64,000 nt of DNA, from the sequence record NC_027402.1; one strand, 5' to 3'. Below the pieces are notes generated by a model that was given only the letters and a program-made list of their open reading frames with translations, ran no database searches and was not told the DNA's origin. Positions 2,444-30,560 of this stretch are shown here, piece after piece. Both the position numbers and the translations under genes were made by a program. Position 1 is the first letter of the stretch; each line of letters begins with the position of its first letter.

Positions 2444-3241
2444 ATGAAAGCGATTCACACCTTTCGCATGACCGGCCAAACTGTTCTCGACATTGATGCG
2501 TACGAAGCCGCTAACTTCACCAAACCGACCAAGCTCTGGGATCGCCTGGTTAAGGTACTACCGCAGAGCGGTGAGGTGCAGTTGGATTTTGTCATGGCAT
2601 CGACGTTGGATAAGACAGTGGCAGTTATTTATACTGCTGACGGTGTGCAGAGTAAGAAGGACCTGGCAATCGAAGATAAAGGCGGGCTGGGTTATCACTT
2701 GTTCCTGCACTGCGTAACCACTGCACCGATTTCAGCTGCGCTGGCGGGTCAGTACGGTTTCGCGAATGCGTATTTCCTGGCACAGAAACTCGCCGTGAAT
2801 GTTATTCCGGGTGACGTGACCACTTACCCTGAATACGTACAGCGTATCCTGCCAGAACACTTCGCTGCAGACGACTACGATTTCAATGTGTTCCGTTTCG
2901 CACTGATCGGCGAATCGCGCGATCCGGAGTACACCGTTGGCCTGCGTGCCTGTCTGCGTCACTCCGTTATCTCTTCGGATGAAGGGATGTCGAATAACGT
3001 GAACGAAGTGTTCCCGATGATGCAAGTCGGTCCGTATATCACTTTCAACTCGTACATTCCGTTCCCGGCACAGATTCTGCCGCCGCAGAACGATAACAGT
3101 GTACTGCCAATCGCCGACAAGTATTCACTGCGTGCGAGCGAAGCAGTTGAAGTGATTAACGATCGTCGCTTTACATTGTCAGTGACCAGCGGTATCAGTG
3201 AACCGGAAGTTGCGGTCTCACAGAGCCTGGATTTGATGTAA
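2444..3241 (+). CDS. Hypothetical protein (265 aa), probably highly expressed
   Basis: SD TAAGGA; host-optimal codons (CTG, CGT, TTC, AAC). Confidence 0.8.
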   Translation: MKAIHTFRMTGQTVLDIDAYEAANFTKPTKLWDRLVKVLPQSGEVQLDFVMASTLDKTVAVIYTADGVQSKKDLAIEDKGGLGYHLFLHCVTTAPISAALAGQYGFANAYFLAQKLAVNVIPGDVTTYPEYVQRILPEHFAADDYDFNVFRFALIGESRDPEYTVGLRACLRHSVISSDEGMSNNVNEVFPMMQVGPYITFNSYIPFPAQILPPQNDNSVLPIADKYSLRASEAVEVINDRRFTLSVTSGISEPEVAVSQSLDLM

Positions 3242-3249
3242 AAAGTGTG

Positions 3250-3284
3250 CCTGGTCTCCTTGTGAGACCAGGTCTCTTTATTTT
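3250..3284 (+). terminator. Intrinsic terminator
   Basis: CCTGGTCTC-cttgt-GAGACCAGG followed by T-rich tract. Confidence 0.8.
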
Positions 3285-3286
3285 AG

Positions 3287-3388
3287 CCCTCTAAACGCAC
3301 TCACAACCTTCTAAAGCCACTCTAACGGTAGAACGACCCTCTAAAGTGATAAAAGCTCTCAAAACGCGTTTGAGAGCGTTATAGAGGG
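3287..3388. repeat. Cluster of CTCTAAA-like short repeats plus palindrome
   Basis: ccctctaaa 3287, ccttctaaa 3307, actctaac 3319, ccctctaaa 3337, GCTCTCAAA-acgcg-TTTGAGAGC 3355-3377, inverted tagaggg 3382. Confidence 0.6.
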
Positions 3389-3408
3389 TGTACTCTGAAT
3401 AAAAATAA

Positions 3409-3433
3409 TTTCAGATATATATTACCTAGGTGA
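3409..3433 (+). promoter_or_regulatory. Phage early promoter P1
   Basis: TTTCAGATA-TATATTAC-CTAGGTGA; TATATTAC is the phiKZ early (virion RNAP) promoter core. Confidence 0.8.
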
Positions 3434-3484
3434 TAGAAGACAATCTATCAACTCAATCGACTATTAATCTAAAGGAGTATTGCC

Positions 3485-3628
3485 ATGTTAACTCGTAACC
3501 ATAAACGTGCCATCTTTGCCATCGTTGCTGTTGTTGCTTTCGCGGTACTGTCTATCACTGTAACTCAAGATTACAACAAGTGCATCGATAACGGTAACTC
3601 TGTTGCCATGTGTACAGGTCGCGGCTAA
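3485..3628 (+). CDS. Small membrane protein (47 aa), absent from ORF track
   Basis: SD AAGGAG; MLTRNHKRAIFAIVAVVAFAVLSITVTQDYNKCIDNGNSVAMCTGRG: basic N-terminus, one TM helix, Cys pair. Confidence 0.75.
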   Translation: MLTRNHKRAIFAIVAVVAFAVLSITVTQDYNKCIDNGNSVAMCTGRG

Positions 3629-3810
3629 TGGACTTTTCTGATGCGCAGTTTGCCGAGTTCTTATCTCACCCGCGTGTTAAACGTGAGTGGGATAATCTCA
3701 CTAACAGTGTTCGTCGTCAGGACGAAGAAGAAATCGTTCACGTTACCGCACAAGTCTTACTCGTCTCACCGACAGGTAATGTGTTTCCAATGCAGCAGGA
3801 GATTTACTAA
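3628..3810 (+). CDS. Hypothetical early protein (60 aa)
   Basis: TAATG coupling at both ends; start moved from GTG 3610. Confidence 0.7.
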   Translation: MDFSDAQFAEFLSHPRVKREWDNLTNSVRRQDEEEIVHVTAQVLLVSPTGNVFPMQQEIY

Positions 3811-3998
3811 TGGGCGTTTTAGTTAATTACGATGGTAAAAACGGAATCATGCTTCGCGAAGTGGAAGATAACGAAACGGTAGAGGTGAATCCGCAAACCT
3901 CAGAACGTACGTTTATCGTGGGGCCGAAAAGCGCACTACCGAAGCCGGACTGGAAAGAAGAGCTGGCGAAGTTCCGTGGGGAACTCGGGAAGAAGTAG
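3810..3998 (+). CDS. Hypothetical early protein (62 aa)
   Basis: TAATG coupling; followed by terminator. Confidence 0.7.
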   Translation: MGVLVNYDGKNGIMLREVEDNETVEVNPQTSERTFIVGPKSALPKPDWKEELAKFRGELGKK

Positions 3999-4009
3999 TA
4001 TAGATAATT

Positions 4010-4039
4010 TAATACCACCTACGGGTGGTATTATTTTTT
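4010..4039 (+). terminator. Intrinsic terminator
   Basis: TAATACCACC-tacg-GGTGGTATTA then T6. Confidence 0.85.
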
Positions 4040-4057
4040 GCCTAAGGAACGTGAAAA

Positions 4058-4474
4058 ATGATTAATGAGAAGCTCCAAAAGTATTTAAAGAATGACACCG
4101 ACTGGATGGTCCTTGACCAGTACGGACGATTTGTTCCGCTATCCAAGGATTCCCCTATACCCCGTGACAAGGCGATTTATATTCCTGACGGTAAGGGCGG
4201 TTATCGTTTCTGGGAAGGCCAGGAAGTAAAAGAGGAAATGTTCTACATGGAGCCGAAGTTCCGTGCAGCGTTCCCATCGAAGAATATCAACGGCTATGTT
4301 TACAACGCAATTCCGCCGATTACGCATCCTAACTTTGAGGTTGTGAACTACCCCGCAACTGTTCTGGATTGGCAACGTGCCATTAGTGAACACTACACGA
4401 TCCCGCTTGAAGGTGTTTACTTCCCATTCCGTGATATTAGTTTAGACGACTTTATTAACTCTCTTAAGGACTAA
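4058..4474 (+). CDS. Hypothetical protein (138 aa)
   Basis: ORF with SD AAGGA. Confidence 0.75.
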   Translation: MINEKLQKYLKNDTDWMVLDQYGRFVPLSKDSPIPRDKAIYIPDGKGGYRFWEGQEVKEEMFYMEPKFRAAFPSKNINGYVYNAIPPITHPNFEVVNYPATVLDWQRAISEHYTIPLEGVYFPFRDISLDDFINSLKD

Positions 4475-4477
4475 AAA

Positions 4478-5338
4478 ATGTACAGCATTACTGATTTTAT
4501 CAAAAGTTCGGATTTCCCCCTACCTTTCGACCACGAAGTATTGGCTAGCGATCCGTTAACCGATGCGGCCATTGTCCAGCTGGACCGCGACAAACGTCGC
4601 ACCTACGTCGTGTTGGTCGAAGGGCAGAGCTACGGCCTGTCTTCTTACGACCTGGAGCAGCAAGAGCGTTTCCTCGATGAAAACCGCAAAACGTCAATGT
4701 ATAGCGCTATCTCTCGTGCGTTGTGCAAGGTAATGGCAACCATTACAGACAGCAAAAAGCGTATCGCTGTGCTGCAGGGTATCAATGCGCTAACGACCAA
4801 AATCCAGCAACTTGAAGGTTTCCATTGCCCACGATTGGAAGCCGCACAGAAGGATGCTAAGGGCGATGAGGCCATGGCGCTGTTTGAAGGCAATACTGTC
4901 TTTGCAACAGCTGAAGCTTGTTATCTCACCTATCCAACTTTTAACTATACGCCAATCAGCGACACCGTAGACGGGATTAAAGTAGAGAACGTTGTGCAGT
5001 GGGGTCGCGCAAATCTCAAGTTTGTGATGTCCCATGAAGAAGAAAATCAAGACGGACTTGGGCAGAAGATTCAACGTTGGTTCACGACGCGTTTGGACGC
5101 CGACTGGGAAGCGCATGTTAACGCAGAGCTTCGTAAATTTCACGCGGTAGTCGCATTGTTAAAAGAAGACACACCCGCCCAGAAACAATCGAAGGCACCA
5201 GTGGTTGGCTGGACGTGTTCCGGCTGTAACCGCAATCATGTCGCAACGGTACCGAGAACACATCGCTACACTTCGCAGACAATGAACATTGCTTGTCCGG
5301 CTTGCGGTAAGATCAACGAAGTTGATTATAAACCGTAG
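4478..5338 (+). CDS. Hypothetical protein with C-terminal zinc ribbon
   Basis: WTCSGCNR...IACPACGK (two CxxC). Confidence 0.75.
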   Translation: MYSITDFIKSSDFPLPFDHEVLASDPLTDAAIVQLDRDKRRTYVVLVEGQSYGLSSYDLEQQERFLDENRKTSMYSAISRALCKVMATITDSKKRIAVLQGINALTTKIQQLEGFHCPRLEAAQKDAKGDEAMALFEGNTVFATAEACYLTYPTFNYTPISDTVDGIKVENVVQWGRANLKFVMSHEEENQDGLGQKIQRWFTTRLDADWEAHVNAELRKFHAVVALLKEDTPAQKQSKAPVVGWTCSGCNRNHVATVPRTHRYTSQTMNIACPACGKINEVDYKP

Positions 5339-5344
5339 TAGTAT

Positions 5345-5376
5345 CCCTCTTACCTTCGGGTAAGAGGGTTTTATAT
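5345..5376 (+). terminator. Intrinsic terminator (UUCG loop)
   Basis: CCCTCTTACC-ttcg-GGTAAGAGGG then T-rich; identical 24-mer at 32154. Confidence 0.85.
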
Positions 5377-5386
5377 TTATTTTCCG

Positions 5387-5425
5387 AAAAGAAAATAAAA
5401 GGCGCTCTCTCCCGAAGGAGAGAGC
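5387..5425 (-). terminator. Minus-strand intrinsic terminator
   Basis: GCTCTCTCC-cgaa-GGAGAGAGC preceded by A-tract (UUCG loop and U-tract on minus strand). Confidence 0.8.
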
Positions 5426-5451
5426 TTATTCACATCCACTTAGAGGTTAAC

Positions 5452-5598
5452 ATGAATACCTTTATGCAACAACTGCGTCAGCAACAGCTGAAACATGTCG
5501 CTTTTCAACAACGTCTGCAAGAGGTTACCCGCCAACCGCAGACTTCCACCCGTACCATTAAAGGACTAGGAGGTGACATCATCTTCAATAAGAAGTAA
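5452..5598 (+). CDS. 48-aa Gln-rich basic peptide, copy 1 (absent from ORF track)
   Basis: SD GAGG; MNTFMQQLRQQQLKHVAFQQRLQEVTRQPQTSTRTIKGLGGDIIFNKK; paralog of 5711-5857. Confidence 0.75.
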   Translation: MNTFMQQLRQQQLKHVAFQQRLQEVTRQPQTSTRTIKGLGGDIIFNKK

Positions 5599-5606
5599 CA
5601 CTAACC

Positions 5607-5629
5607 AGGGGTGTTCGAGCACCCCTTTT
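5607..5629 (+). terminator. Hairpin with short T run after peptide 1
   Basis: AGGGGTG...CACCCCT-TTT. Confidence 0.6.
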
Positions 5630-5710
5630 AACTCCCGTGACAGTATATCGGTGCATTGTGTACCACCACAGCGCAGCGATATATTAACAACCTGCCTAAG
5701 GAGGCACTAC

Positions 5711-5857
5711 ATGGAACAACTACGTTCGCAAATACTTAACTATTACGTTAAGCAAACCCAATTCAACCAACGTGTACAACAGTTGACTGCGCCCAAGCAG
5801 AACACTGTTCGTCGTATCAAGGGTTTAGGAGGTGAAATACTACTAAACAAAAGTTAA
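5711..5857 (+). CDS. 48-aa Gln-rich basic peptide, copy 2
   Basis: SD TAAGGAGG; MEQLRSQILNYYVKQTQFNQRVQQLTAPKQNTVRRIKGLGGEILLNKS; 19/48 identical to copy 1 without gaps. Confidence 0.8.
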   Translation: MEQLRSQILNYYVKQTQFNQRVQQLTAPKQNTVRRIKGLGGEILLNKS

Positions 5858-5870
5858 CATGAAATAACTC

Positions 5871-5898
5871 TTACCCGAGTGCTGGAACACTCGGGTAA
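5871..5898. other. Perfect 11-bp stem-loop after peptide 2
   Basis: TTACCCGAGTG-ctggaa-CACTCGGGTAA. Confidence 0.7.
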
Positions 5899-5990
5899 TT
5901 CCATGCATATAAATAGTTCGTCGTATTTTTTTTTGATCTTGGCAGGACGCATAAACTGCCCGTAGGGGAGCCTAAGCTCCCCAGTGCTCG

Positions 5991-7553
5991 TTAGAACAAA
6001 TCATCACCCATTCCACCGGTGAAGAAGTTGATAGACGACGCTGTTACGGTTTCTTCTTTATCACAATCCCAAGGCAGGATGCCTACATCCTGGAAAGGTA
6101 TCACTGTGTAGTGATAAGATTCTTTAGTATCGATAATGGTGCGGTGCTTACCGCGTTGAACTTCTAAGAAGCTATGGCCGTTGACCACACGCTTGTTAAA
6201 ATACATTTCACCATCGGCCTCGTTATCAAGGCTCGAACAACTATCGTAAAGACCACGACCAGGTAAGTTCTTACAGAAACCTACCGGGTCTAACGCTTTT
6301 AAGCGCTTACCTTCTGGGGAAATCTGGTGTGGGGCAATTAAGAACCCACGGTTGCGTACCACTTGGATGTTACGAGCAATACGATAAATTTCTTTGATAT
6401 CACTCCCGGCAATGCCGTTGCCGTGTCCTGCTTTGCTGATTGTGCCTAAGTAGTCTGCGCGAATGCCAACAACATGATAACCGCGACGACGTAAGTCGAG
6501 AATAAGGTCGTTGATGTAGTGCACTTTAAAATCGGAGTTGGTGTGCTTTTGGAAAACGTAGTCCCAACCGTTTGCGCGAATCTTACCACAGAGGTAATCA
6601 GACATTGCTGTTGTGTGTGCTAACTTCTCTTCAGCGGTTGCATCCTGTGAAATGGTCATCTGTGGAACTTGTCCTTCAAAATGACCGTACAGAGCTTGAT
6701 AGCCGTAAGCTAAGTTAACGTCGAGTTCGTTTTCTAAACTCAAGTCAAGAATAATTGGTTGCAGTGTGCCCTTCACATCCGCCATTACTTTCTCAGGCGT
6801 GTTGAAGATAGGAATCGATAAGCTCAGCAAGAGACTGAACAAAGACTTACAGTTAAAAGGTAACGCTGGCATTAGCCACAGTTCTTCGGTAATCCCTTTG
6901 TTACAACCGAGCATTTGGTTAATGGCTTTCCAGCCCGTCTGCAAACCATTACCTGCAGCTTTCTTGTTAATCGAGTCGAACACTTTAACAAACGGAGCCC
7001 GATTATCTGTAACCAGCTCACCGACCAATGATGGAATCTTATTATGAGAGCGTTCACCGAACGTAGATAGCGCCTCTTTGAGTTCGAGCACTGCGGTGTT
7101 CAGATCAACACGTGTCTCAGTTCCATTCAATGCTCCGAACGCGCGACCCATTTTTGTTTTGAGTTCGACGCTCTGTAAACATTGACGTAATTGGAAATAA
7201 TATTGAGACAGTTGTCGATTAAGATGCTCGGTACGTTTGTCTTCTTCCTCGGGCAAATCGTCTTCGAGGAATTTGGTAATCGTATCGTATAGAGGACGTA
7301 CTTGAGTGGTGGCCAGCTTCAAGCGCTTCATAACGCTCGCGTGGTCGTATTCCATGCCGCCGTCTATGATAGATGTGATAATGTCCTTGATCTCGATGAG
7401 TGCAAAGCGCTCTTCGCCATCTTCCGCATATTCCGGAAGCTTGATCTGCATCAGAACTTTTCTTATGACATCATGATCCTTGCTAGGGTCCGTCAGCATA
7501 GATTCTGTATACAGTGCGGCTAAGGCGGTTATCAACATCATTTTACTATTCAT
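5991..7553 (-). CDS. dnaB: DnaB-like replicative helicase (phiKZ gp118 type)
   Basis: SF4 helicase layout: Walker A variant ALPFNCKS, Walker B region IRADYL, PHQ motif, QRGKHR arginine finger; position next to the capsid gene. Confidence 0.85.
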   Translation of the reverse strand: MNSKMMLITALAALYTESMLTDPSKDHDVIRKVLMQIKLPEYAEDGEERFALIEIKDIITSIIDGGMEYDHASVMKRLKLATTQVRPLYDTITKFLEDDLPEEEDKRTEHLNRQLSQYYFQLRQCLQSVELKTKMGRAFGALNGTETRVDLNTAVLELKEALSTFGERSHNKIPSLVGELVTDNRAPFVKVFDSINKKAAGNGLQTGWKAINQMLGCNKGITEELWLMPALPFNCKSLFSLLLSLSIPIFNTPEKVMADVKGTLQPIILDLSLENELDVNLAYGYQALYGHFEGQVPQMTISQDATAEEKLAHTTAMSDYLCGKIRANGWDYVFQKHTNSDFKVHYINDLILDLRRRGYHVVGIRADYLGTISKAGHGNGIAGSDIKEIYRIARNIQVVRNRGFLIAPHQISPEGKRLKALDPVGFCKNLPGRGLYDSCSSLDNEADGEMYFNKRVVNGHSFLEVQRGKHRTIIDTKESYHYTVIPFQDVGILPWDCDKEETVTASSINFFTGGMGDDLF

Positions 7554-7567
7554 GGAGCATCCTTAAA

Positions 7568-8092
7568 ATGCAAATTCGTTTTAGTCCACCGTGGGAAGTT
7601 CAATCTAACATAGATAAAGGGGCTGGCGTTAAAAAGTTGGAGGAACTCCAAGCAAGCTTCTTTAACTGGTTATATGACTGCTCGTCGGGCTTTAGTTCCA
7701 TCATACTGCCAGTGAGTGACCCTATTTCGATTTATAAATCGATTATGGCACCACCTGCACTTCCGACTCTTTATTATGACCAGGTCTTAAACCTGGTTGA
7801 GAAAGGTACGAATGAAACCCTTGCTGATTTATATGGGGAATCATTCGACGGTCGTTTACGTTGGGTGTTCTCACAACGTGGCGATGTTGTTGTGGCGTCT
7901 TTTGCAGAAGCTAAATCCGGACCGGGTTTTTCTTTAAGTGAAGACCACGCTGCGAAAAAGATGTTCTGCGCAGAACTTTTTAAATATATGCGTCCCAAGA
8001 CTCGTGTCGTGGATGATACGTTCAGTACGTCGACGCAGTTTGCTGCGCACGAAGTGCTGACGCAGTTGTACGCATGTCATTTATCTAAATAA
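7568..8092 (+). CDS. Conserved protein upstream of capsid, probably head-associated
   Basis: Start moved to ATG 7568 to avoid overlapping the helicase; synteny with phiKZ gp119. Confidence 0.6.
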   Translation: MQIRFSPPWEVQSNIDKGAGVKKLEELQASFFNWLYDCSSGFSSIILPVSDPISIYKSIMAPPALPTLYYDQVLNLVEKGTNETLADLYGESFDGRLRWVFSQRGDVVVASFAEAKSGPGFSLSEDHAAKKMFCAELFKYMRPKTRVVDDTFSTSTQFAAHEVLTQLYACHLSK

Positions 8093-8104
8093 GGTAAACT
8101 TGAA

Positions 8105-10405
8105 ATGAAAGATACCCGTATCGCTAGTCTGGACCAGCTGGTTCAGCAGGGCAATGCTCTGGTCGCTGCTGCCAAGGCAGGCTCTTCCGCTAATGACGTA
8201 TGGCAAACCGTAGCCGTTGGCGAATCTGTACGTAAAAATGCTGCCGGCTTCACCAACCTGCGTGACACTGCTCAGCAGCACTACGAAGCTGTAAACCCTG
8301 GCAAAACCATGAGCCACGCTGCTCAGGTTGCTTCTGCGATGATTCTGGCTGCTGCCGGTCACGAAGATGACTTCATGACCCGTGTTGCTGCTGAGAGCGC
8401 GAAGCCGGAATACGCCAGCTATATGCCGATCGCTATTTCTGGTGCAGCATCTCTGGCTGCTGACTACGGTAAAACTCCGCTGGTCGCAACCGAATACTAC
8501 ACCAACAAAGACCTGGACAAAAACCTGGGTCTGACCTGGACGCTGAACGTGCGTGCTCTGGAAACTCAATCCAAGTTTGCAGAGACCCTGTTCCCGACCA
8601 TCACTGTGGACACCAACGACGTCGGCATCACCGTTCGTACCAAAGTTACTACTGTAACTCGTGGTATCCTGAACGCCCTGCTGACCAAAGACGTGGTTGA
8701 AGACAACCGTCAGCCGCTGCATAACGCGCTGTCTAACCACAAAGTCCTGCAGGACGATGCTATCCGTATCGTACCTTACGTGATGGAAACCGGTGAGAAC
8801 GCGAAGTTCTTCGTATCCGAAGACATCATCGAAAACGAAAACGTTCAGCTGGGTCGTGTGCCGGCGTATCCGACCAACTACCTGAGCTTCTCTGAGCGTC
8901 GTCTGAACCTGTTCCAGCTGTCTGCCCATCCGGGTATCGTGCAGGAAGGTTACGATGAAACCGACGAAATCGCACCGGGTGCAGCGCTGGGTAGCCTGCT
9001 GCTGTCTGTGCGTAAGCCGACCGAAGAAGCGAAAGATGGTGCGCTGATCAAACTGAACGTACGCGACATGCAGTTCGCTACCTTCCAGCGTCCTCCTGAA
9101 GGTGATGGCCGTGAGCTGGTCCTGCAGTTCCGTCGCACTGTGTTCTCCCTGAACGCCAAGTCTCTGGACTGGAAAGGTGCTGAAATCCCGGCACTGGCCG
9201 CTCTGGCACAGAACGATTACACCATTCGTTATTCCATGAACATCAGCATGTCTCTGTTCACCAACGGTCAGTTCTCTGGTCGTGTTGACGTGACTGCACC
9301 GTCTCTGGAAATCGAAGGTCTGTACGACGCAACTGGTACTGCTGTTGATATCGAAAGCGGCACCGGCAAAGTCATCATCGACAACCTGAAACTGGAGCTG
9401 CTGGGCTGGCGCTTCGACGGTACTCGTACCAACGAGAACCGGAGAACCCAGGGCCTTCTGCTCGACCCGATTTGGGAACAAGAGAACTACAAACTGCAGT
9501 ACGGTTCTCCGATCATGACCAAATCTCCGGTTGGCGTTGAATACGACGACACCGAACGTCTGGACGACCTCGTTTCTGCGGTTAACATCCGTAACGAAAT
9601 GCTGGCTATCACTCAGACTCTGTCTTACACCGAAGCGGTTAAGAACGCAGCTGCGTCCATGATCACTCCGTGGGACAAACCTGCTATCCGCGGCCTGGGC
9701 CGTCACTGGGTTGCTCCGTGGTACAGCGAAAGCGACTACGAAGTGGACAAAGTGATCCAGTCTCTGGATACCAAAGATGCGCTCATCAACGCTCGTCAGG
9801 GTCTGGTACAGCGTATCGGTGACCAGGTAACTCGTGCTATCCAGGACTCTCGCTTCATGCCGGCTCTGCGCCTGCTGACTGCGGACCCGAACGCACTGCC
9901 GAAAGTTGTTATCGCAACTGACGAACCGACTGCTGCAATGCTGCTGCTGGTTCAGGGTGACCAGCGTCTGCTGGGCGATCGCTACGAGTACGAAGTTATC
10001 ACCACCAACGATGACCGCTGGCGTGTGAAGAACGAAGCTGACGGCAGCTGGACTCGCCGCCTGCAGTGGGTTCTGAAAGTTCCAACCGCTGACGATGGTT
10101 CTTACTGTGTTCTGAACTGGGGTAACCACTTCTGGTCTCCGATCATGGTAACCAACATCAACATCCAGCGTAACGGCGCTACCAGCAAAGAGCTGGCAGT
10201 ACAGCCTCGTAACGCGCACATCTGCCACTGCCCGATCACTGGTCTGATCTGGATTAAAGGTATCACCAAGTTCGTGGAAGAGAAACTGGCGTTCAACGTC
10301 ACTACTACTTCCAACGGTACTGGCGGTACTAATGGCGGTAATGCGGGTGATGTTGGCGGCGGCGCTACCCAGCCAGGTACTGGCGGTGAAGGCGCTGGCG
10401 GCTAA
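8105..10405 (+). CDS. Major capsid protein (phiKZ gp120/SPN3US gp75 type)
   Basis: 766 aa; extreme codon bias; Ala-rich propeptide ending in ATE-130; ETLFPTITV motif; Gly-rich C-terminus. Confidence 0.92.
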   Translation: MKDTRIASLDQLVQQGNALVAAAKAGSSANDVWQTVAVGESVRKNAAGFTNLRDTAQQHYEAVNPGKTMSHAAQVASAMILAAAGHEDDFMTRVAAESAKPEYASYMPIAISGAASLAADYGKTPLVATEYYTNKDLDKNLGLTWTLNVRALETQSKFAETLFPTITVDTNDVGITVRTKVTTVTRGILNALLTKDVVEDNRQPLHNALSNHKVLQDDAIRIVPYVMETGENAKFFVSEDIIENENVQLGRVPAYPTNYLSFSERRLNLFQLSAHPGIVQEGYDETDEIAPGAALGSLLLSVRKPTEEAKDGALIKLNVRDMQFATFQRPPEGDGRELVLQFRRTVFSLNAKSLDWKGAEIPALAALAQNDYTIRYSMNISMSLFTNGQFSGRVDVTAPSLEIEGLYDATGTAVDIESGTGKVIIDNLKLELLGWRFDGTRTNENRRTQGLLLDPIWEQENYKLQYGSPIMTKSPVGVEYDDTERLDDLVSAVNIRNEMLAITQTLSYTEAVKNAAASMITPWDKPAIRGLGRHWVAPWYSESDYEVDKVIQSLDTKDALINARQGLVQRIGDQVTRAIQDSRFMPALRLLTADPNALPKVVIATDEPTAAMLLLVQGDQRLLGDRYEYEVITTNDDRWRVKNEADGSWTRRLQWVLKVPTADDGSYCVLNWGNHFWSPIMVTNINIQRNGATSKELAVQPRNAHICHCPITGLIWIKGITKFVEEKLAFNVTTTSNGTGGTNGGNAGDVGGGATQPGTGGEGAGG

Positions 10406-10435
10406 TAATCCGTAAGGATTACGTTGCCTAAGATT

Positions 10436-10473
10436 AGCTTACTCCCTTCGGGGAGTAAGCTTTTTCTTTTTTT
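10436..10473 (+). terminator. Intrinsic terminator (UUCG loop)
   Basis: AGCTTACTCCC-ttcg-GGGAGTAAGCT then T run. Confidence 0.9.
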
Positions 10474-10482
10474 CTAAAAATT

Positions 10483-10506
10483 TATAGATAGATATTATCT
10501 TAGGGA
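10483..10506 (+). promoter_or_regulatory. Early-type promoter P2 (variant)
   Basis: AGATA-GATATTAT-CTTAGGGA, immediately after terminator. Confidence 0.65.
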
Positions 10507-10540
10507 GAGAGTCATTCGGTTTTAACTTAAGGAGACAGTA

Positions 10541-10684
10541 ATGGAAGTCAATTTAGAGAGATCAAGACTAGTTGCACCGATGTTTGATGGGCGCGGTTCT
10601 ATGGCGAACGGTCACCACGTTTGATACCCTAAAGTTTTTTACGTTAAGGGCACTGGGTATGAACCCGTGCCCAAAGTAATCTGA
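10541..10684 (+). pseudogene. Small ORF with in-frame TGA (27 aa, or 47 codons if read through)
   Basis: SD TAAGGAG; MEVNLERSRLVAPMFDGRGSMANGHHV*YPKVFYVKGTGYEPVPKVI*. Confidence 0.35.
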
Positions 10685-10704
10685 GATAGATATTATCTAC
10701 GTGA
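10681..10704 (+). promoter_or_regulatory. Early-type promoter P3 (variant)
   Basis: AGATA-GATATTAT-CTACGTGA. Confidence 0.6.
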
Positions 10705-10737
10705 ATAATTCTTTTGGTATTATTACTGGGATGTTCA

Positions 10738-11742
10738 ATGAACCGTTATGATTTAGACGTTCAGCCAACGCTAACCCAGCGGCCCATGCACCGTGGTGCC
10801 GTGTCGAAGACTATCACGTACGAAAATAATACCGGGTTTCCCATATACGTCACTGAACTCAGTGGCGGGCATTTTGTTTTAGCCCCGTCGTCCACCACAG
10901 CGGCGGAGTTTGGGATTGTGATTTACGTGACCTATACGGTGTTTGCGAACGGTGCGAACTTATCTGGTTTGCGCGACGCACATTCGCCGAAGCAGTATGC
11001 GCAGATATGTAAGGAATTAACTACGAACGGCGAAACGACGCTGATGTATGTAGTTGATGATATCGGTGCGTTAATGCGTGGCGACTTGGTGGTATTGAAG
11101 AAGCTAGGAATGGCTTTCTCTACCCAACCAGTAAAACTCGATTCTGAGGTTATTGGTAAGCCGGGAGGGGATCGTAAAGAATTTGCCTTGGGCGTGGTAG
11201 TTGTGCAGAAGTACGAAGACCCAGCACCTTTAAAGTGGCTGAGGTTCTATACAACGATGTTGGAAGTCGAACCGATTCGATCGAAGTATTACGACGAGGG
11301 TATTTACATGGTAATCGGTGGTGCGGAGTGTGTCGAAGGGGGTAAGATGATAATGTACGCTTTCGATGACCCGATGTCCCCGTTCCGGGCGTTTGCATCT
11401 GAAGATGAAGCGAGGCGTTATCGGTGGCTCGATAACATTCCAGAGTTGCGAGATGTTCGTGCGAAGCTGGAAGCCACGTATCAGGCCAAGTTGCAAGATC
11501 TCGATGAGAAAAAGAATCGGCAAGACCTCGATTATCGTACGCAACTTAATAATCTGGCGCTGGAGAAGGAGAGGATTAACACCCTTAACGCAATCCAGAC
11601 GAATGAGCTTAAGTTGCGTTCCGATGTTCGTAAAGACCAATACGAGTCCCGAGCTTATCAGCGAAAAGATAGCTCGGAGTTCTTGAAATCCATTCCCGCG
11701 TATTTGGCTGCAGGGGTAGCACTCGTTGGGATGATTCTCTGA
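10738..11742 (+). CDS. Hypothetical protein with C-terminal coiled coil and hydrophobic tail
   Basis: Heptad-like region then YLAAGVALVGMIL; start moved to ATG 10738. Confidence 0.75.
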   Translation: MNRYDLDVQPTLTQRPMHRGAVSKTITYENNTGFPIYVTELSGGHFVLAPSSTTAAEFGIVIYVTYTVFANGANLSGLRDAHSPKQYAQICKELTTNGETTLMYVVDDIGALMRGDLVVLKKLGMAFSTQPVKLDSEVIGKPGGDRKEFALGVVVVQKYEDPAPLKWLRFYTTMLEVEPIRSKYYDEGIYMVIGGAECVEGGKMIMYAFDDPMSPFRAFASEDEARRYRWLDNIPELRDVRAKLEATYQAKLQDLDEKKNRQDLDYRTQLNNLALEKERINTLNAIQTNELKLRSDVRKDQYESRAYQRKDSSEFLKSIPAYLAAGVALVGMIL

Positions 11743-11753
11743 GGGAGGCCGGT

Positions 11754-13532
11754 GTGTTTAAAGATGCGATTAGGAAGATTAAAGAGGCAGGCGAAATAGT
11801 GCCTTTTAATCGTGCAATTGCAGAAGGAGTTGGGTACACACAAGCTAAAGATGGGATACATGATCGTGTGGCAACCATTCTACGTCGCGAGTTGACGTAT
11901 GATGAAATCGATAACCCGAAATTACCAGAAGGGTTAACGGTATTAGGTTGTCGCCAAATGTCGCCGTTTGAAGCTTTTATCTTTAAGTTATCGAAGTCGG
12001 ATAACAATTCACGAAATAATCGTGGCCGGTCAATTATTAACATCTCATCCACTGACACGTATATGGTAATGGCCTCGTTCCGAGTTCCAGGTGATCCTCG
12101 CCCGGTGCAACGACCAATGAGCCTGCCGTTTATTCGTCGTGGCGGCTTAATGAACTACTATGGTACAACGTACCACGTAGCACCTGTAATCCATCAACCT
12201 GGTATATGTCGTGAGCACGGCGGTATCTTTATTAACTTTGACTTCACTCGCAAGGTGTCTATCAAGTTCTGTAAGAAACCAACGAAGATTCTGGTGAATG
12301 GTCGCCCTGAGCAGCTGTTCTTGCCAGGTACATCGAATCTGTTTGTCTCAACTGGACAGATTGGACACGACACCGATGAGAAGCCACTGATGTATTGGCT
12401 CTTTGGGCGTTATGGCTTTAAACAAGCCGTGAAACGTTATGCGGGCGTTGATGTGGCGATTTGGCCAGCGATTAAAGTACGTGATGTAGACTTAACGAAG
12501 TATGTGGTGATTCAATCCGGTGAGCCACAACTCGCGAAGACCATCCAGTACGTGCTGTTGGTTAAACGTGAAGATATGCCTAACACCGATGCAGGGCGTT
12601 GGGATCAAAACGAACATCTGTTGCTGGTAGCGACTGCCGCATTCTTCAAAGCAGCGCACTACTACGCAGGTAAACAGAACAGTAAGAACGGTCGTGCGCC
12701 AACATTACCGGGGCTGTTTACACAGATTAATGAAATGGCAATGGACGAAGATATTGCAAACCTCAACTCTGCAGCGTCTTGGCGTGAAGTGTTGGGCCGC
12801 AGTATTCGCGGACTGAAGCCTTCGGATATCGAACTGAGTCGCAGTATGGACAGCCACTTCCAGGAATGTGAACGCTATGTCAACAGCACCTTCCGTGGTG
12901 AGCTGATGGCAAACGATCCGTCCATCCCTGATGATTTGGATATGTTTGATTTCCTCTGGTATACCACGCAGCTGATGGTACGCACTCGACTTACCAAGCA
13001 AGATGATATTCCGTCTATGTACGGAAAACGTCTCACGGTAACCGATTACCTACTGTTGGGTCAACGTGGCTTTACCACAACGATCTCGAAAATACGTTGG
13101 AAGCTGGGGCAGTTGGAACATCGGACTCCAGAGACAGCGGCGAAGTCTATTCGAGACGCACTGAACAAACAGATCGTGCTCAATCTGGTGATGCGCACCA
13201 TTACGAGCAACGGCGGTATCAGTTTCTTCAATGCCTCTACAGAATCAATGGTATTGGCAGTGTCTACGCACGCCATCGGTCAAACCGAAACCGATGCTAA
13301 GCGTTCGAAGAAAGGAGGCAAGACCGTTAACTTGAACGACCGTACTAAGCACGCATCCGCGTCGCATCTGGAATGTGGTAACGTCTACTACATTCCTAAG
13401 TCGGCACCGTTTAAGGCGAACATCCTCAACCCGTACATGAAGACCAACCCAAGTTTGGTAATGATGCGGAATCCTAAACTGGACCCGTACATCAGACCGA
13501 CCGAAGAAGACATTGCTAAAATCGGCCGCTAA
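11754..13532 (+). CDS. Split multisubunit RNA polymerase beta-type subunit, non-virion RNAP (phiKZ gp123 type)
   Basis: 592 aa; LPFIRRGGLMNYYGTTYHVAPVI resembles the beta N-terminal region; position two genes after the capsid. Confidence 0.8.
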   Translation: MFKDAIRKIKEAGEIVPFNRAIAEGVGYTQAKDGIHDRVATILRRELTYDEIDNPKLPEGLTVLGCRQMSPFEAFIFKLSKSDNNSRNNRGRSIINISSTDTYMVMASFRVPGDPRPVQRPMSLPFIRRGGLMNYYGTTYHVAPVIHQPGICREHGGIFINFDFTRKVSIKFCKKPTKILVNGRPEQLFLPGTSNLFVSTGQIGHDTDEKPLMYWLFGRYGFKQAVKRYAGVDVAIWPAIKVRDVDLTKYVVIQSGEPQLAKTIQYVLLVKREDMPNTDAGRWDQNEHLLLVATAAFFKAAHYYAGKQNSKNGRAPTLPGLFTQINEMAMDEDIANLNSAASWREVLGRSIRGLKPSDIELSRSMDSHFQECERYVNSTFRGELMANDPSIPDDLDMFDFLWYTTQLMVRTRLTKQDDIPSMYGKRLTVTDYLLLGQRGFTTTISKIRWKLGQLEHRTPETAAKSIRDALNKQIVLNLVMRTITSNGGISFFNASTESMVLAVSTHAIGQTETDAKRSKKGGKTVNLNDRTKHASASHLECGNVYYIPKSAPFKANILNPYMKTNPSLVMMRNPKLDPYIRPTEEDIAKIGR

Positions 13533-13563
13533 TTATTACATCTCTTAAGGAGTATTATTTACA

Positions 13564-15240
13564 ATGAGCATTACTGTTGAACAAATCAAAAACGTCATCG
13601 TTAAACACCTCGATCAGGACGCGGTACTGTCGCAGTTGAATAACGTGATGCGTAGTCGTAGTATTCCGCCAGATCAGGCGTTAAAGATTGCGACGTATGT
13701 TGCGGCATGGGCAGCATCCAAAGGGGGTAGTGAAGCACAGGTTATCGCATATGCGGTCGATGCGTATAAAGCAGCTGCCTATCAGCAGGTGCATAACGCG
13801 GGCGACGCGTATAACGACGATCGTCACACCAAACTGGTTAATGCTTGGGAACAAGTCGGTAAGATTCTTGCCGAAATTCGTTCTCAGCAGTCCGGCGGTT
13901 TGGGTGGCAGCGGTGGTTTAGGTGGTGGTAGCAACGCAGGCGGGTTACTGGGCGGTAACAGTTCTGGCGGTGTCCGTGTTACTGATGGCCTGACCATGTC
14001 TTCTGCGCCATCCGGCGGCGTTAAGATTGGTAACACAGATGCGGCACTAACCGTGATTGCTGGCGGTGCAGGTCTTAACCTGGTTAGTGATCCTATCCTG
14101 AACCCACAACCGGCGCAAGTAGTCCCAGCCACAGCACAACAGCCCCAGCCTGAACCAGCACAGGTGCCTGTACAACCAATGCCGGTGTCTAATGCTACAG
14201 TTAATAACCCAGTGCTTTCCCCACTCGGCGCAACAGAAGAAACCGAGAAGGACACTACCAATGGCCCAATTAACAACATTCTGCAGGAGATTGATTTGAT
14301 GGAAGACTACGCACTTCACGAGCTGAAAACCCCCGAGCTTAAAATGTCGATTCCAGCGAAGGAAGCTAACAGTCGCATTAAGCAATCTGTTTACGCGGAA
14401 ACGCGTGATTGGGCTACACCGTTGCAAGATATCTTTAACGGTAATGAAGAGGTTGTTTTCTACGACGGGGCTGACCTGATTGTGCGTGCACGGGATAGCT
14501 ATCGCGCGTATCTGGTCGGTGTTAACACTGATATGTGCGAGCGTATGAAACAATTTGTTGCTAAGCACGACGCACTGAAATCCGATCTCGACAACCTGGC
14601 ACTGGTTGAAGATGTTGAAACTATCATGGCTAAGGTGAAGCGTACGATCGATGAACTGCGTAAGAACACGAAAGAACTGCACGAATATGCGATTGCGAAC
14701 AGCAGCGAAGCAGAAGTGGTTATCAGTGAAATTTCTCGCTTTGCTAATGCGTACCTGGCGAATATCACTTTCCTGGTACACAACGCGCTGTCGCTGGGCA
14801 CTAAGCGTGGTAAAGATGTGCCGAAGTTCAAAGCTATCGATTTCGAACGGAAAATCAGCGATATTGATTTCTTCGTAAAAGATCTGTTCACAGCAACCGC
14901 TGGCGACAACGGCGTAAGTGAATATGAAGACTGGTTCCGTGACCTGTTCCTGATGGTAGCAAACTCTCTGCGCAAACTGACTATCAAGCTGAGCGATTCT
15001 GGCAAGGTGGTTAATCTGATTCAGAGCCAGTTCACCATCGTGATTCCAGGCATGTACCATTCTGTTGATAAACACGACGTAGTTACGGTAGCGTCTCTGG
15101 GCAATACCGCAGACCCTGTTGTGTCTATCTACGAAGCAGTACAGGAAAACGTGCCACATGCAATTGTATTGATGCAGCTGCCGCAGCACACTTACTTGCT
15201 TCTGAGCAATGGTGAGAAAACTGCACCAGTGTTGTACTAA
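13564..15240 (+). CDS. Hypothetical two-domain protein with Gly-rich and Pro/Gln-rich linker
   Basis: SD TAAGGAG; GGLGGSGGLGGG and PQPAQVVPATAQQPQPEP linker. Confidence 0.8.
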   Translation: MSITVEQIKNVIVKHLDQDAVLSQLNNVMRSRSIPPDQALKIATYVAAWAASKGGSEAQVIAYAVDAYKAAAYQQVHNAGDAYNDDRHTKLVNAWEQVGKILAEIRSQQSGGLGGSGGLGGGSNAGGLLGGNSSGGVRVTDGLTMSSAPSGGVKIGNTDAALTVIAGGAGLNLVSDPILNPQPAQVVPATAQQPQPEPAQVPVQPMPVSNATVNNPVLSPLGATEETEKDTTNGPINNILQEIDLMEDYALHELKTPELKMSIPAKEANSRIKQSVYAETRDWATPLQDIFNGNEEVVFYDGADLIVRARDSYRAYLVGVNTDMCERMKQFVAKHDALKSDLDNLALVEDVETIMAKVKRTIDELRKNTKELHEYAIANSSEAEVVISEISRFANAYLANITFLVHNALSLGTKRGKDVPKFKAIDFERKISDIDFFVKDLFTATAGDNGVSEYEDWFRDLFLMVANSLRKLTIKLSDSGKVVNLIQSQFTIVIPGMYHSVDKHDVVTVASLGNTADPVVSIYEAVQENVPHAIVLMQLPQHTYLLLSNGEKTAPVLY

Positions 15241-15247
15241 GTAATAC

Positions 15248-15279
15248 GGAGACCTTCGGGTCTCCTATTATTATTTTTT
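15248..15279 (+). terminator. Intrinsic terminator (UUCG loop)
   Basis: GGAGACC-ttcg-GGTCTCC then T-rich. Confidence 0.8.
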
Positions 15280-15305
15280 ATTTTATCATGAAAAGGAGTA
15301 TTAAA

Positions 15306-15572
15306 ATGTCTAGTGTTGAAGCAGTAATCTATTTTGAAAACGATGGGGTCGCAGGGTGCGGCTTCCCGAAGACAGCTGGGGTTAAATCTCTGTTGGCAAA
15401 GTATAAAGAAGAGCTTAAGAAAACGGCAGGGCAGAACCCTGGCGTGCCACTGCGTAGTATTTTTCCTGAGATGGAGAAGGCTGCAAAAAATGATCCGGTG
15501 TTGGGTATGTTCTGCGGGATGATCAAAGAGCGATTCCCTGACATTGATAAGTACCACATTACACTGGCGTAA
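15306..15572 (+). CDS. Hypothetical protein (88 aa)
   Basis: SD AAGGAG before ATG 15306. Confidence 0.75.
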   Translation: MSSVEAVIYFENDGVAGCGFPKTAGVKSLLAKYKEELKKTAGQNPGVPLRSIFPEMEKAAKNDPVLGMFCGMIKERFPDIDKYHITLA

Positions 15573-15606
15573 TTATTATAGAGTAGCTCTATAATGAGGT
15601 TCGAGC

Positions 15607-15909
15607 ATGGTAAAGTTCATTGTTGTCAACATGGATTTTGAGCGTAGTGTGCGTTTTCGCTTTGAGTTACCTGAAAACAAAGCGACTGAAGCTTTCTTAG
15701 CCGACTTCCACAAAGCCAAAACCGCGATCAGTCATGGGCGTCGCTGGCAAATCTTCTATAACGCCCGTAAAGGCCTCCTGAAGGCGTTAAAAGCAGCAAA
15801 GGATACAAAGGTATTGGAAAAGCTAGAACCTTTCCAGAACGACCCTCTGGCGATTGGTATCATGCTCGACGAACTGGTTAATAAACCTAAAGCTGCTACA
15901 GAAGATTAA
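15607..15909 (+). CDS. Hypothetical protein (100 aa)
   Basis: SD GAGG. Confidence 0.75.
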   Translation: MVKFIVVNMDFERSVRFRFELPENKATEAFLADFHKAKTAISHGRRWQIFYNARKGLLKALKAAKDTKVLEKLEPFQNDPLAIGIMLDELVNKPKAATED

Positions 15910-15973
15910 AAAAAGAAAAGGCACCTCTCCCCGAAGGGAGAGGTAAACCTTATTTCTTTTTCTTTTTTTTTGT
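15909..15973. terminator. Bidirectional terminator between convergent genes
   Basis: A-tract, ACCTCTCCC-cgaa-GGGAGAGGT, T-tract. Confidence 0.85.
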
Positions 15974-18715: not shown

Positions 18716-18726
18716 TGGGGTCTCCG

Positions 18727-20910: not shown

Positions 20911-20917
20911 GAGACTT

Positions 20918-21445
20918 ATGGGATACCGTATAGATTTATCAAAAACCCCGAAACAGATTCTGGTTGAGAGAATCAATTACGTTTTTAAGTTATCGTATAG
21001 TGAAAATAACTACGAGTTTAACCCACGTGGGGTGTGGCCGCTGACCCGAGCAGAGCGACGCGCTAAAGGCGTGGAGTCTAAAGTTGCGGCGCGCTTTGTA
21101 AATGGGGTACACGGCACCCAAGAGTTTTACCTGACTCGTGCGGACTTAAACAAGTTACTTAAAGACGTAACGGTTGAAGTCCCGAAAGGTGCGGTGGAAT
21201 GGAGCCATGAATTAGTTCCGTATATTGTCGATGAGCTGGGTCTCCAGCTCGACACCTACGACATCATGGTTGAACCGATTACCCCAGAAATGGAATCGTA
21301 TGAGGCGCGCTTAATCCCGCACCATCTATCTTTCAAAGGCACGATTGCGATTACTTTTGTTGACCCAACTCCCCGTAAGCTGGCGCAGCTGGTAACTAAA
21401 CGGGCACTCGACGGGTTTCGCCCAGGAGAATTTTTAAATGGCTAA
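20918..21445 (+). CDS. Virion structural protein with the tail paralog N-domain
   Basis: GTQEFYLTRADLNKLL...ELGLQLDTYDI and C-terminal ALDGF. Confidence 0.65.
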   Translation: MGYRIDLSKTPKQILVERINYVFKLSYSENNYEFNPRGVWPLTRAERRAKGVESKVAARFVNGVHGTQEFYLTRADLNKLLKDVTVEVPKGAVEWSHELVPYIVDELGLQLDTYDIMVEPITPEMESYEARLIPHHLSFKGTIAITFVDPTPRKLAQLVTKRALDGFRPGEFLNG

Positions 21446-22325: not shown

Positions 22326-22975
22326 TGCTGATTCCTGAGCCGAGGTTACCCGACAGTATGGTGAGGATTGCGGCTGTTGACCCCGGTACCGCCCATCTTG
22401 GGATGGCGGTTATCGACTGGGAATTTGGCCAACCTCAAGGTGAAGTTGTCTGGGCGGGAACGGCTCATGTTGCGGACCCTACGCACAATAGCGCCTTTGG
22501 CGAGTGCGTAGGGAAACGTGATGCGCGTTTGGTGGAATTAGAAGAACGCTTTCGCGAGTTTTTAAAACTGGCAAGGCCGACTTTTGTCGCTACCGAAACT
22601 CCATTCATGCGAAGAGCTAAGCTCTCAGCGTACGAGTCTGGGGTGGAGTTGCAACTGATGTTGCGGCGAACGCTTTGGGACGTGTTTCCCGAAAAATATC
22701 TCCATGGGTTTAATCCTATTATTGTGAAGTCGTACGTTGGTGTGGAAGCAAAGGGTACAGATAAATCGCATATGCAGCAAGCGGTTACCAAGCTCTACGC
22801 TAACCATACCCGGTGCGACTTATCGGTATTGGATGAACACAGTATCGATGCCGTGGCGGTGGGCAATATCTTCGTCAGGGTCAACTTATTAAACCTAAAT
22901 AGTCTTCTTCCGCCCAAGGTTAAAGTTCCTAAAGCTAAGGCCGGTAAGCGGAAAGGAAGACGCCGGAGGAAATAG
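22325..22975 (+). CDS. ruvC: RuvC-like Holliday junction resolvase
   Basis: RIAAVDPGTAHLGMAV, ATETPF and EHSIDAVAVG give the D-E-D catalytic set; basic C-tail. Confidence 0.85.
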   Translation: MLIPEPRLPDSMVRIAAVDPGTAHLGMAVIDWEFGQPQGEVVWAGTAHVADPTHNSAFGECVGKRDARLVELEERFREFLKLARPTFVATETPFMRRAKLSAYESGVELQLMLRRTLWDVFPEKYLHGFNPIIVKSYVGVEAKGTDKSHMQQAVTKLYANHTRCDLSVLDEHSIDAVAVGNIFVRVNLLNLNSLLPPKVKVPKAKAGKRKGRRRRK

Positions 22976-22977
22976 CG

Positions 22978-30538: not shown

Positions 30539-30560
30539 CGGATAGATATTATTTTAGGGA
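30536..30560 (+). promoter_or_regulatory. Early-type promoter P4
   Basis: TTTCGGATA-GATATTAT-TTTAGGGA. Confidence 0.65.

Follow-up and report, generated by a model that had tools for sequence, protein, structure and literature searches.

Sequences that resemble a Shine-Dalgarno (SD) element have been described in several roles; for example, the +1 site of prfB and the -1 site of dnaX are recoding sites stimulated by an SD sequence, and STAB-SD, which was reportedly described by Agaisse and Lereclus in 1996, is an SD-like mRNA stabiliser of Bacillus thuringiensis cryIIIA. A different sort of precedent is provided by the 'moron'-like accessory cassettes of phages, many of which are anti-defence cassettes. 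Here, we analysed a locus that shares features with each of these systems. The locus lies in a window of 64,000 nucleotides (nt) that corresponds to positions 62001-126000 of Salmonella phage SPN3US (JN641803 / NC_027402, a genome of 240,413 bp), and it contains gp71 and gp72, two tandem open reading frames (ORFs) that each encode a peptide of 48 amino acids (aa). We think it fairly probable, taking all parts together, that gp71 and gp72 are real translated genes of an orphan family of small basic proteins, that they are two old and interchangeable alleles in an accessory cassette with a probably very abundant transcript, and that the tail of the gene is constrained both as protein and as an SD-like RNA element.

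The likeness to STAB-SD lies in a strong SD-like sequence that is complementary to the 16S rRNA 3' end and that is not used for initiation. However, STAB-SD is located in the 5' untranslated region of a Gram-positive mRNA, whereas the gp71/gp72 element belongs to phages of Enterobacterales and is located inside the ORF (codons 39-42), 6 codons upstream of the stop. Moreover, STAB-SD stabilises its mRNA, whereas stabilisation by the gp71/gp72 element is putative. With the prfB and dnaX recoding sites, the locus shares an internal SD-like element that is located a few codons upstream of a stop codon and is followed by a hairpin. In contrast to these sites, gp71 and gp72 have no slippery sequence, and the shifted frames stop inside the SD-like decamer, so that no extended product is predicted. 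As for the 'moron'-like cassettes, the shared features are a short ORF with its own SD, bounding stem-loops, a location between conserved genes, and presence or absence among close relatives. The differences are that gp71/gp72 have no identified promoter, show no similarity to characterised accessory proteins, and are under purifying rather than diversifying selection.

ORF1 (gp71) was located at positions 5452-5598 of the window and ORF2 (gp72) at positions 5711-5857, both on the plus strand, and each consisted of an ATG start, 48 codons in total, and a stop. An earlier note on this DNA, which was made from the letters and a list of ORFs, had described two ORFs of exactly this length, and we confirmed both of them. 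Its count of 19/48 identical residues in an ungapped comparison of gp71 and gp72 was reproduced; BLASTP with one gap gave 22/47, with an expect value (E) of 1e-12 for a single comparison. Several other readings of the note also proved correct. Specifically, each ORF had its own SD (AGAGGT at 5442-5447 and TAAGGAGG at 5697-5704) and a downstream hairpin (5607-5626 followed by TTTT, and 5871-5898), the tail R-x-I-K-G-L-G-G-(D/E)-I-x-x-N-K was found in both peptides, and the N-terminal region was rich in glutamine (10 and 8 Gln) and was modelled by AlphaFold2 as a helix spanning residues 2-25. The note had also pointed to a wrong start in the ORF list, in which ORF2 indeed appeared only as a 94-aa ORF with a GTG start at 5573-5857. 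This longer plus-strand ORF, in which the gp72 frame is open back into the gp71 tail, is probably a product of chance; an open spacer of 46 codons is expected by chance about 1 time in 9.

Both genes and their family are already public as hypotheticals. In the public records, ORF1 is YP_009153365 (67452-67598) and ORF2 is YP_009153366 (67711-67857), and each is labelled 'hypothetical protein'. The gene numbers gp71 and gp72 were derived from the positions of the two ORFs relative to the helicase gene and to the gene of the major head protein, gp75. Our literature searches turned up no work discussing gp71/gp72.

To place the peptides, we relied on profile searches. Residues 1-48 of each peptide matched positions 1-48 of PHROG 18219, a profile with 48 positions (E of 1.2e-27 and 6.8e-27). 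The earlier note had not recognised the family, and this part of it was superseded by the matches to PHROG 18219 (E about 1e-27) and by the existing annotation. No function has been described for PHROG 18219, so the membership of gp71/gp72 gives no mechanism. Homologues of 47-49 aa were found at the same site, after a gp70-like gene and convergent with the helicase gene, and they were present in single copy. They belonged to Seoulvirus (SPAsTU, STsAS, and pEa_SNUABM_29), Machinavirus (Machina, Huxley, Parshik, pSal-SNUABM-04, and pEa_SNUABM_6, 10, 42, and 43), and Wellingtonvirus (pEa_SNUABM_11), and further homologues were found on metagenomic contigs of up to about 240 kb. Thus, homologues that keep the frame and motif, whose absence the earlier note had named as a refutation of its proposal, were found across three genera, and they keep the length as well. 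A word-based search with the family alignment yielded 34 protein clusters, and the full-length members whose source was named were SPN3US-like Salmonella and Erwinia phages. When 1.84 billion representative proteins were searched exhaustively with the profile, the only matches were to three representatives of the family and to two repeat proteins. The two repeat proteins, one with a SHOCT-like repeat and the other with an SQYxQRVGGLN repeat, were rejected as relatives; they matched the helical QY-x-QRV stretch only and did not have the KGLGG tail. No credible relatives outside the family were found among the 1.84 billion proteins, and the SPN3US genome contained exactly two family copies. In the sequence collections that we searched, SPN3US-like jumbo phages that infect Enterobacterales were the only carriers of the family.

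In an alignment of 17 sequences, M1, Q20, R21, K37, G38, L39, G40, G41, I43, and K47 were invariant. When the alignment contained 24 sequences, M1, Q20, R21, G38, G41, and I43 were invariant, and K37, L39, G40, and K47 were present in at least 90% of the sequences. Hydrophobic residues recurred at helix positions 4, 8, 18, 22, and 25 in the alignments. The start codon was kept in the homologues, as was a purine-rich GAGG/GGAG box at the position of the SD. The ratio of nonsynonymous to synonymous substitution (dN/dS), which the earlier note had proposed as a check, was 0.08-0.40 by the Nei-Gojobori method in pairs whose synonymous sites were unsaturated; these values were well below 1, which favours real genes. 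The substitution pattern, together with the kept ATG, SD, and length, indicated that this is a translated gene under purifying selection.

A sign of an additional constraint was found in the tail. The codons for Gly40-Gly41-Asp/Glu42 were GGR-GGT-GAN, which creates the octamer GGRGGTGA, in 18/18 family members whose DNA was read, and the dinucleotide TA preceded the octamer in 17 of the 18. These sequences represented at least nine lineages, and their pairwise proportions of synonymous differences (pS) were 0.53-1.0. Other invariant residues were encoded by a variety of codons (four for Gly38, three each for Leu39 and Ile43, and two or three for Lys47, Gln20, and Arg21), and Gly-Gly was written GGR-GGT in 23 of the 328 cases (7%) in long SPN3US ORFs. 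Conservation of the octamer by chance had a probability on the order of 1e-10 if the nine lineages were independent and about 2e-5 with only four. The octamer GGAGGTGA is complementary to eight bases of the 16S rRNA 3' end, and the octamer can still pair with the anti-SD whether A or G is present, since G.U pairs are allowed. In the 240-kb genome, counting both strands, GGRGGTGA occurred 5 times, and two of these occurrences were in gp71/gp72. About 15 occurrences were expected from length alone, which suggests that very strong SD-like sequences are avoided outside of real starts.

No ATG, GTG, or TTG was found within the 12 nt after GGAGGTGA in gp71 or gp72. Both shifted frames hit a stop (TAG and TGA) inside the decamer TAGGAGGTGA that contains the octamer; thus, the decamer is not a frameshift signal. 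Frameshifting or read-through that would join the two ORFs was likewise rejected based on these stops, the terminator between the ORFs, and the lack of this arrangement in single-copy phages. We found no conserved internal RNA structure and no intramolecular partner for the octamer, and the Rfam search gave only sub-threshold, miRNA-like matches that were caused by long hairpins. Because the octamer is kept at synonymous sites in addition to the constraint on the amino acids, we conclude that constraint acts on the tail at the protein and RNA levels alike.

The RNA element might make ribosomes pause or might anchor them a few codons ahead of the stop, it might be a STAB-SD-like stabiliser, or it might have a different role. 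In the mechanism that we propose, GGRGGTGA in the mRNA would pair with the 16S rRNA 3' end, and the in-ORF SD-like element would hold or pause ribosomes near the stop codon or would stabilise the short mRNA. In nucleus-forming phages, transcription and translation are spatially separated, so any RNA role would act on exported mRNA. A further form of this idea is dual coding, in which the Gly-Gly-Asp/Glu codons would be held as GGRGGTGA so that a very abundant, hairpin-capped mRNA pairs with the anti-SD from inside the ORF; nucleus-forming jumbo phages would then use an in-ORF ribosome anchor, pause, or stabiliser of a kind not described before, or else an RNA that titrates 30S. We put this form forward as speculative, and we regard it as rather improbable.

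To examine the predicted shape of the protein, AlphaFold2 was run with the 24-sequence alignment. The model contained a helix at residues 2-25 with a predicted local distance difference test (pLDDT) score of about 83, a low-confidence linker containing proline, and a short, weak beta-hairpin (36-38 and 41-43). Each peptide has 8 Lys+Arg residues versus 2 Asp+Glu residues, for a net charge of about +6. As modelled, gp71/gp72 is a very basic mini-protein with one hydrophobic stripe on the helix and a hydrophobic, Gly-turn hairpin. The predicted shape is thus an amphipathic, Gln-rich helix, a loose linker, and a K-G-L-G-G-(D/E)-I-h-(F/L) beta-hairpin. Such a protein may act stoichiometrically at high copy number, and its basic helix and hairpin may bind a conserved polyanionic target (the ribosome, RNA, or DNA) or an acidic protein surface. 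Searches with the peptides gave nothing usable in Pfam, no match for gp71/gp72 in PADLOC, no usable match in a PDB profile search, self matches only in Foldseek comparisons with viral models (BFVD), and nothing usable in the ESM Atlas, in which scores were at most 0.86.

Several known identities were considered and rejected. In the case of ribosomal protein uL29, the PDB profile search showed a weak local likeness of an F-N-x-R-h-Q helix plus a V-R-R segment, which was not significant (E of 0.9). The Pfam family Ribosomal_L29 (PF00831) had no match in the six-frame translation of the genome at E up to 10, whereas 14/14 control genomes were positive, and no Ribosomal_L29 family was listed in an hmmscan of the peptides. 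The KH fold consists of about 70 aa arranged as beta-alpha-alpha-beta-beta-alpha around a GXXG loop. The I-x-G-x-G-G-x-I segment of gp71/gp72, with its basic flanks in a basic protein, resembled this loop and served as a lead only; no KH family was matched at E up to 10, and the model of the 48-aa protein is one helix plus a hairpin. Double-glycine leader peptides, the precursors of class II bacteriocins or quorum signals, have an N-terminal leader that ends in GG ahead of the mature peptide, and a C39-peptidase ABC exporter is encoded nearby. In gp71/gp72, no more than 7 conserved residues come after the GG, there is no leader-like hydrophobic spacing, and the neighbours are gp70 and a DnaB-like helicase. 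The arbitrium peptide AimP starts with a signal sequence and ends with a mature peptide that varies, and its gene is next to that of the AimR receptor. In gp71/gp72, the N-terminal end is hydrophilic and has many Gln residues, the tail is kept from genus to genus, and neither neighbour resembles a receptor gene. Finally, the SPN3US prohead protease gp245 cleaves at the motif AXE (PMC10052503). We rejected a role as a prohead-protease substrate or virion peptide, as gp71/gp72 have GG(D/E) and no AXE and are unmentioned in the virion and head proteomics papers that we consulted.

The two genes lie between gp70, which is located upstream (4478-5338, plus strand), and a gene for a DnaB-like helicase, which is located downstream on the opposite strand. 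Positions 4400-7600 of the window had 100% identity with SPN3US (JN641803 and NC_027402) and 97-99% identity with many Seoulvirus isolates. The features of the locus were as follows (window positions).

5345-5385, plus strand: gp70 terminator, a GC-rich hairpin (5345-5368) followed by a T-rich tract; the stem letters vary between genera and the pairing is kept (terminator scan).
5388-5425, no strand assigned: A-rich tract and hairpin H2 (5404-5425), a predicted intrinsic terminator of the minus strand and the left edge of the cassette (terminator scan, minus strand).
5442-5447, plus strand: gp71 SD AGAGGT, 4 nt 5' of the ATG (read from the sequence).
5452-5598, plus strand: gp71, the small basic protein in its 'type 1' allele, 48 aa (PHROG 18219; ORF, profile match, and annotation).
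5567-5576, plus strand: SD-like decamer TAGGAGGTGA inside gp71, with the core GGAGGTGA at 5569-5576 and the codons for Leu39-Gly40-Gly41-Asp42 (sequence).
5607-5630, plus strand: terminator-like element 3' of gp71, a hairpin (5607-5626) and TTTT; present in two-copy phages only and identical in SPLA5c.
5697-5704, plus strand: gp72 SD TAAGGAGG, part of which lies in a small hairpin at 5693-5706 (read from the sequence).
5711-5857, plus strand: gp72, 'type 2' allele, 48 aa; in SPAsTU-like phages, the single gene is its orthologue (ORF, profile match, and annotation).
5826-5835, plus strand: SD-like decamer TAGGAGGTGA inside gp72, with the core at 5828-5835 (sequence).
5871-5898, no strand assigned: hairpin H3, which closes the cassette on the right; it resembles a terminator on the minus strand and, on the plus strand, is a 3' stem-loop of the small-gene transcript without a U-tract.

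The flanking gene order provided a comparison with phages that do not have the small gene. Asesino, ChrisDB, Kwan, and Phobos are sister phages with helicase identities of 80-91% (200 aa compared) and with the same flanking order, and the more distantly related Vibrio phage pVa-21 (helicase identity of 49%) keeps this order as well. In these five phages, 68-206 nt separate the flanking genes, and no small ORF was found at the syntenic site. The empty site of Asesino contains one bidirectional terminator, which consists of an A-tract, a hairpin, and a T-tract, and the A-tract and hairpin of H2 in gene-carrying phages correspond to half of the bidirectional terminator in gene-less phages. Compensatory changes were found in 6/9 predicted pairs of H2 (11 sequences) and in 7/10 pairs of H3 (12 sequences), and in both hairpins the letters vary between genera and the pairing is kept. 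Judged from these comparisons, the small gene is an accessory cassette bounded by two predicted stem-loops, and it occupies the gap with convergent terminators that separates gp70 from the DnaB-like helicase.

Next to these edges, T-tract and A-tract sequences of the two opposed terminators can pair as an AT-rich hairpin (5369-5403), which is kept in pEa_SNUABM_29 with a compensating length change. The consensus terminator of SPN3US is a hairpin followed by TTTTATTTT(C)TTT, and bidirectional terminators have the mirror AAAATAAAAGG on the left; sites of this kind are located at 5345-5425 in the window and at 11479, 46615, 88399, 93450, 137624, 138845, and 159991 in the genome. The conserved AT-rich tracts upstream of the small gene were also considered as a promoter, and this idea was rejected; the tracts match the general terminator tracts of SPN3US and are present at the empty site of Asesino as well. 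In Wellingtonvirus, the site differs between members: in pEa_SNUABM_11 (L010 1650-2053), the small gene is accompanied by about 400 nt of additional spacer on the helicase side, and Kwan (L015 2403-2609) carries a 206-nt spacer that has no gene and shares the right-hand part of the pEa_SNUABM_11 spacer.

The relationship between the two copies was examined using synonymous and nonsynonymous differences. Between gp71 and gp72, synonymous sites were saturated (pS of 0.76-0.80), and the proportion of nonsynonymous differences (pN) was 0.39. In comparisons with the single gene of SPAsTU, gp72 had a pN of 0.17 and a pS of 0.40, and gp71 had a pN of 0.31 and a pS of 0.63. Since gp72 is closest to the single gene of SPAsTU, we identify it as the resident orthologue. 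The resident 5' region, namely H2, the spacer, and the SD, is now found in front of copy 1, and copy 2 has a different leader of 113 nt that includes the terminator-like hairpin at 5607-5626. The saturated synonymous sites and the orthology with SPAsTU indicate that the locus holds two old alleles in tandem and is not the result of a recent duplication. The earlier note had called the pair duplicated, which stands in the sense that gp71 and gp72 are paralogues of one family and does not stand in the sense of a recent event.

Seven records contained two copies (two records of SPN3US, Proteus phage 7, MET_P1_082_240, SPLA1a, SPLA3, and SPLA5c), and many SPN3US-like isolates contained a single copy (SEGD1, the SPFM series, EC001, Lh1B, JN03, SaP7, and 1252). 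The single gene of phage 1252 was a chimera: nt 1-126 matched copy 1 at 123/126 positions, and nt 127-200 matched copy 2 and its flank at 74/74 positions. The junction was located inside the decamer TAGGAGGTGA that is common to both copies, which corresponds to the loss of exactly one repeat unit of 259 nt. SEGD1-type phages had the same copy-1 head, but their tail resembled copy 2 of SPLA5c and their flank was a different one, and these differences suggest that more than one deletion event occurred. A 44-aa variant that lacks four residues of the helix was also present (P0011; contigs as long as about 243 kb). Since the phages evidently manage with one chimeric copy, the two copies are likely to be redundant rather than partners; the comparison argues for gp71 and gp72 being redundant and functionally interchangeable. 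The proposal in the earlier note that the pair was retained while the helix diverged is therefore weakened, since many close relatives carry one chimeric gene and the pair as such is not maintained.

To infer transcript abundance, we used contigs of public runs only, among them those of a transcriptomic library from a single-copy relative (run X7). In this library, the contig depth was about 800 for gp70, about 3,000-23,000 for the helicase, and 25,000 or more for the small gene, for which depths summed to 216,000 in one bin. A contig with a depth of 797 ended at 5464, and the summed depth climbed steeply over 5363-5576. Based on this contig end and this rise in depth, the RNA start was placed just right of H2. 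The data suggest that a short, very abundant RNA starts at this point and covers the ORF. The library had no contigs between 5898 (H3) and 6004, towards the end of the helicase gene, and such a hole proves nothing.

The motif AGATAGATATTATCT recurred in the window at 10489-10499, 10687-10697, 30543-30553, and 47896-47906 and at about 10 more places in the genome. It usually had an A-rich stretch before it and was mostly on the plus strand, upstream of genes. Given what PMC7598289 describes for early promoters of jumbo phages, AGATAGATATTATCT probably represents the consensus of the early promoters in SPN3US, which the virion RNA polymerase would use. Another element, which consists of TATTTTTTTTTG-N-GGCAGGACGCATAAACTGCC followed by a GC hairpin (5920-5990), was located just past the helicase stop and was conserved across genera, including in gene-less phages. 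It could be involved in helicase 3' end processing or termination, or it could be a promoter.

The upstream neighbour gp70 is essential and is not a virion protein (PMC5105663). Its C-terminus (5213-5335) forms a CxxC...CxxC zinc ribbon that weakly matched PHROG 6417, 'translational regulator' (E of 0.002), and also weakly matched a treble-clef zinc-finger family. This type of zinc ribbon was found in SPAsTU, pEa_SNUABM_29, and Asesino, and no zinc ribbon was found in the upstream gene of Machina, pEa_SNUABM_11, ChrisDB, Kwan, Phobos, or pVa-21. A link between the small gene and the Com-like zinc ribbon of gp70 was rejected because the phyletic patterns disagree.

The points that weigh against our interpretation of gp71 and gp72 as an accessory cassette of translated, abundantly transcribed genes should be considered together. 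The gp71/gp72 protein is not mentioned in the SPN3US virion and head proteomics papers that we consulted. The confidence of the AlphaFold2 model is moderate (mean pLDDT of 68.5 and predicted template modelling score, or pTM, of 0.33), and the binding target was deduced from charge and size alone. The evidence from the transcriptomic library consists of contig depth only, which is a poor measure of level, is blind to strand and to ends, and comes from a single study. No promoter was identified for the cassette, and AGATAGATATTATCT was not found near gp71/gp72. Furthermore, because H2 resembles a terminator of the minus strand, the genes may also be transcribed in antisense.

How do other explanations fare? 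That the ORFs are merely open by chance in a terminator-rich spacer whose real feature is non-coding is hardly credible; although they are very short and lie in a hairpin-rich spacer with a minus-strand terminator upstream, 34 protein clusters agree in length and motif, the homologues keep the start codon and SD, and dN/dS is well below 1 with saturated dS. The substitution pattern effectively refutes this explanation. The earlier note had favoured host-takeover or anti-defence peptides whose KGLGG(D/E)I tail docks on a protein partner, a reading under which the pair would serve as two specialised versions, and we consider such effectors a less probable alternative. The small size of the proteins, their own expression cassette, the patchy accessory distribution among sister phages, the apparently abundant transcript, and a tail that is strongly conserved next to a more variable helix would all fit effectors. 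However, the peptides matched none of the available profiles related to defence or anti-defence and no solved structure, the presumed early promoter motif is not upstream, and the conservation of the tail is partly at the nucleotide level. In addition, the pair collapses to one chimera in many isolates, so two specialised versions are not required.

Two further explanations seem unlikely to us, and to a similar degree. One of them gives the main role to the RNA, such that a very abundant, hairpin-capped short transcript binds the 16S 3' end through its perfect SD-like decamer as a 30S sponge, a translational modulator, or a self-stabiliser, and the peptide is secondary. It draws on the octamer, in which at least 9 lineages keep the synonymous sites except for an A/G alternative that preserves the anti-SD pairing, and which occurs 5 times in 240 kb, 2 of them in gp71/gp72 without a start codon after it, as well as on covarying stem-loops at both ends and the very high contig depth. 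Selection at the protein level is nevertheless evident outside the octamer, where Gly38, Leu39, Ile43, and Lys47 use several codons and dN/dS is <0.4. The ATG, the SD, and the length of 47-49 codons are conserved, no conserved internal RNA structure was found, and a sponge would need copy numbers on the scale of ribosomes. The other explanation is a late, non-virion peptide for assembly or DNA handling that condenses or chaperones DNA or RNA together with the neighbouring replication and head genes. A basic protein, a gene located between the helicase and the head-gene neighbourhood (the major head protein is two genes away), and the missing motif of the presumed early promoter would suit this role. 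The gene is missing, however, in sister phages that have the same order and 80-91% identical helicases, so it is not a core partner, and the protein is unreported in the virion and head proteomics papers that we consulted and has no AXE prohead-protease site. Thus, the reading that we prefer is still that of real, interchangeable small genes whose tail carries both a protein and an SD-like RNA constraint.

The new information provided here consists of the history of the locus, which holds two alleles, one chimera, or no gene, of a hint that expression is very high, and of the octamer that is kept at synonymous sites. SPN3US serves as the genetic model of the giant Salmonella phages, and no function is known for the majority of its genes. 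If nothing in our interpretation holds up, gp71 and gp72 would be an ordinary pair of small hypothetical phage genes. If it is true that the transcript matches the contig depths, the small gene would be among the most strongly expressed SPN3US products, yet it is unstudied. The locus is also a natural experiment, in that otherwise collinear phages carry two old alleles, one chimera, or none, and the contribution of the gene is therefore measurable via natural variants. Finally, the octamer provides a testable case of overlapping protein and RNA constraint within a gene of 150 nt.

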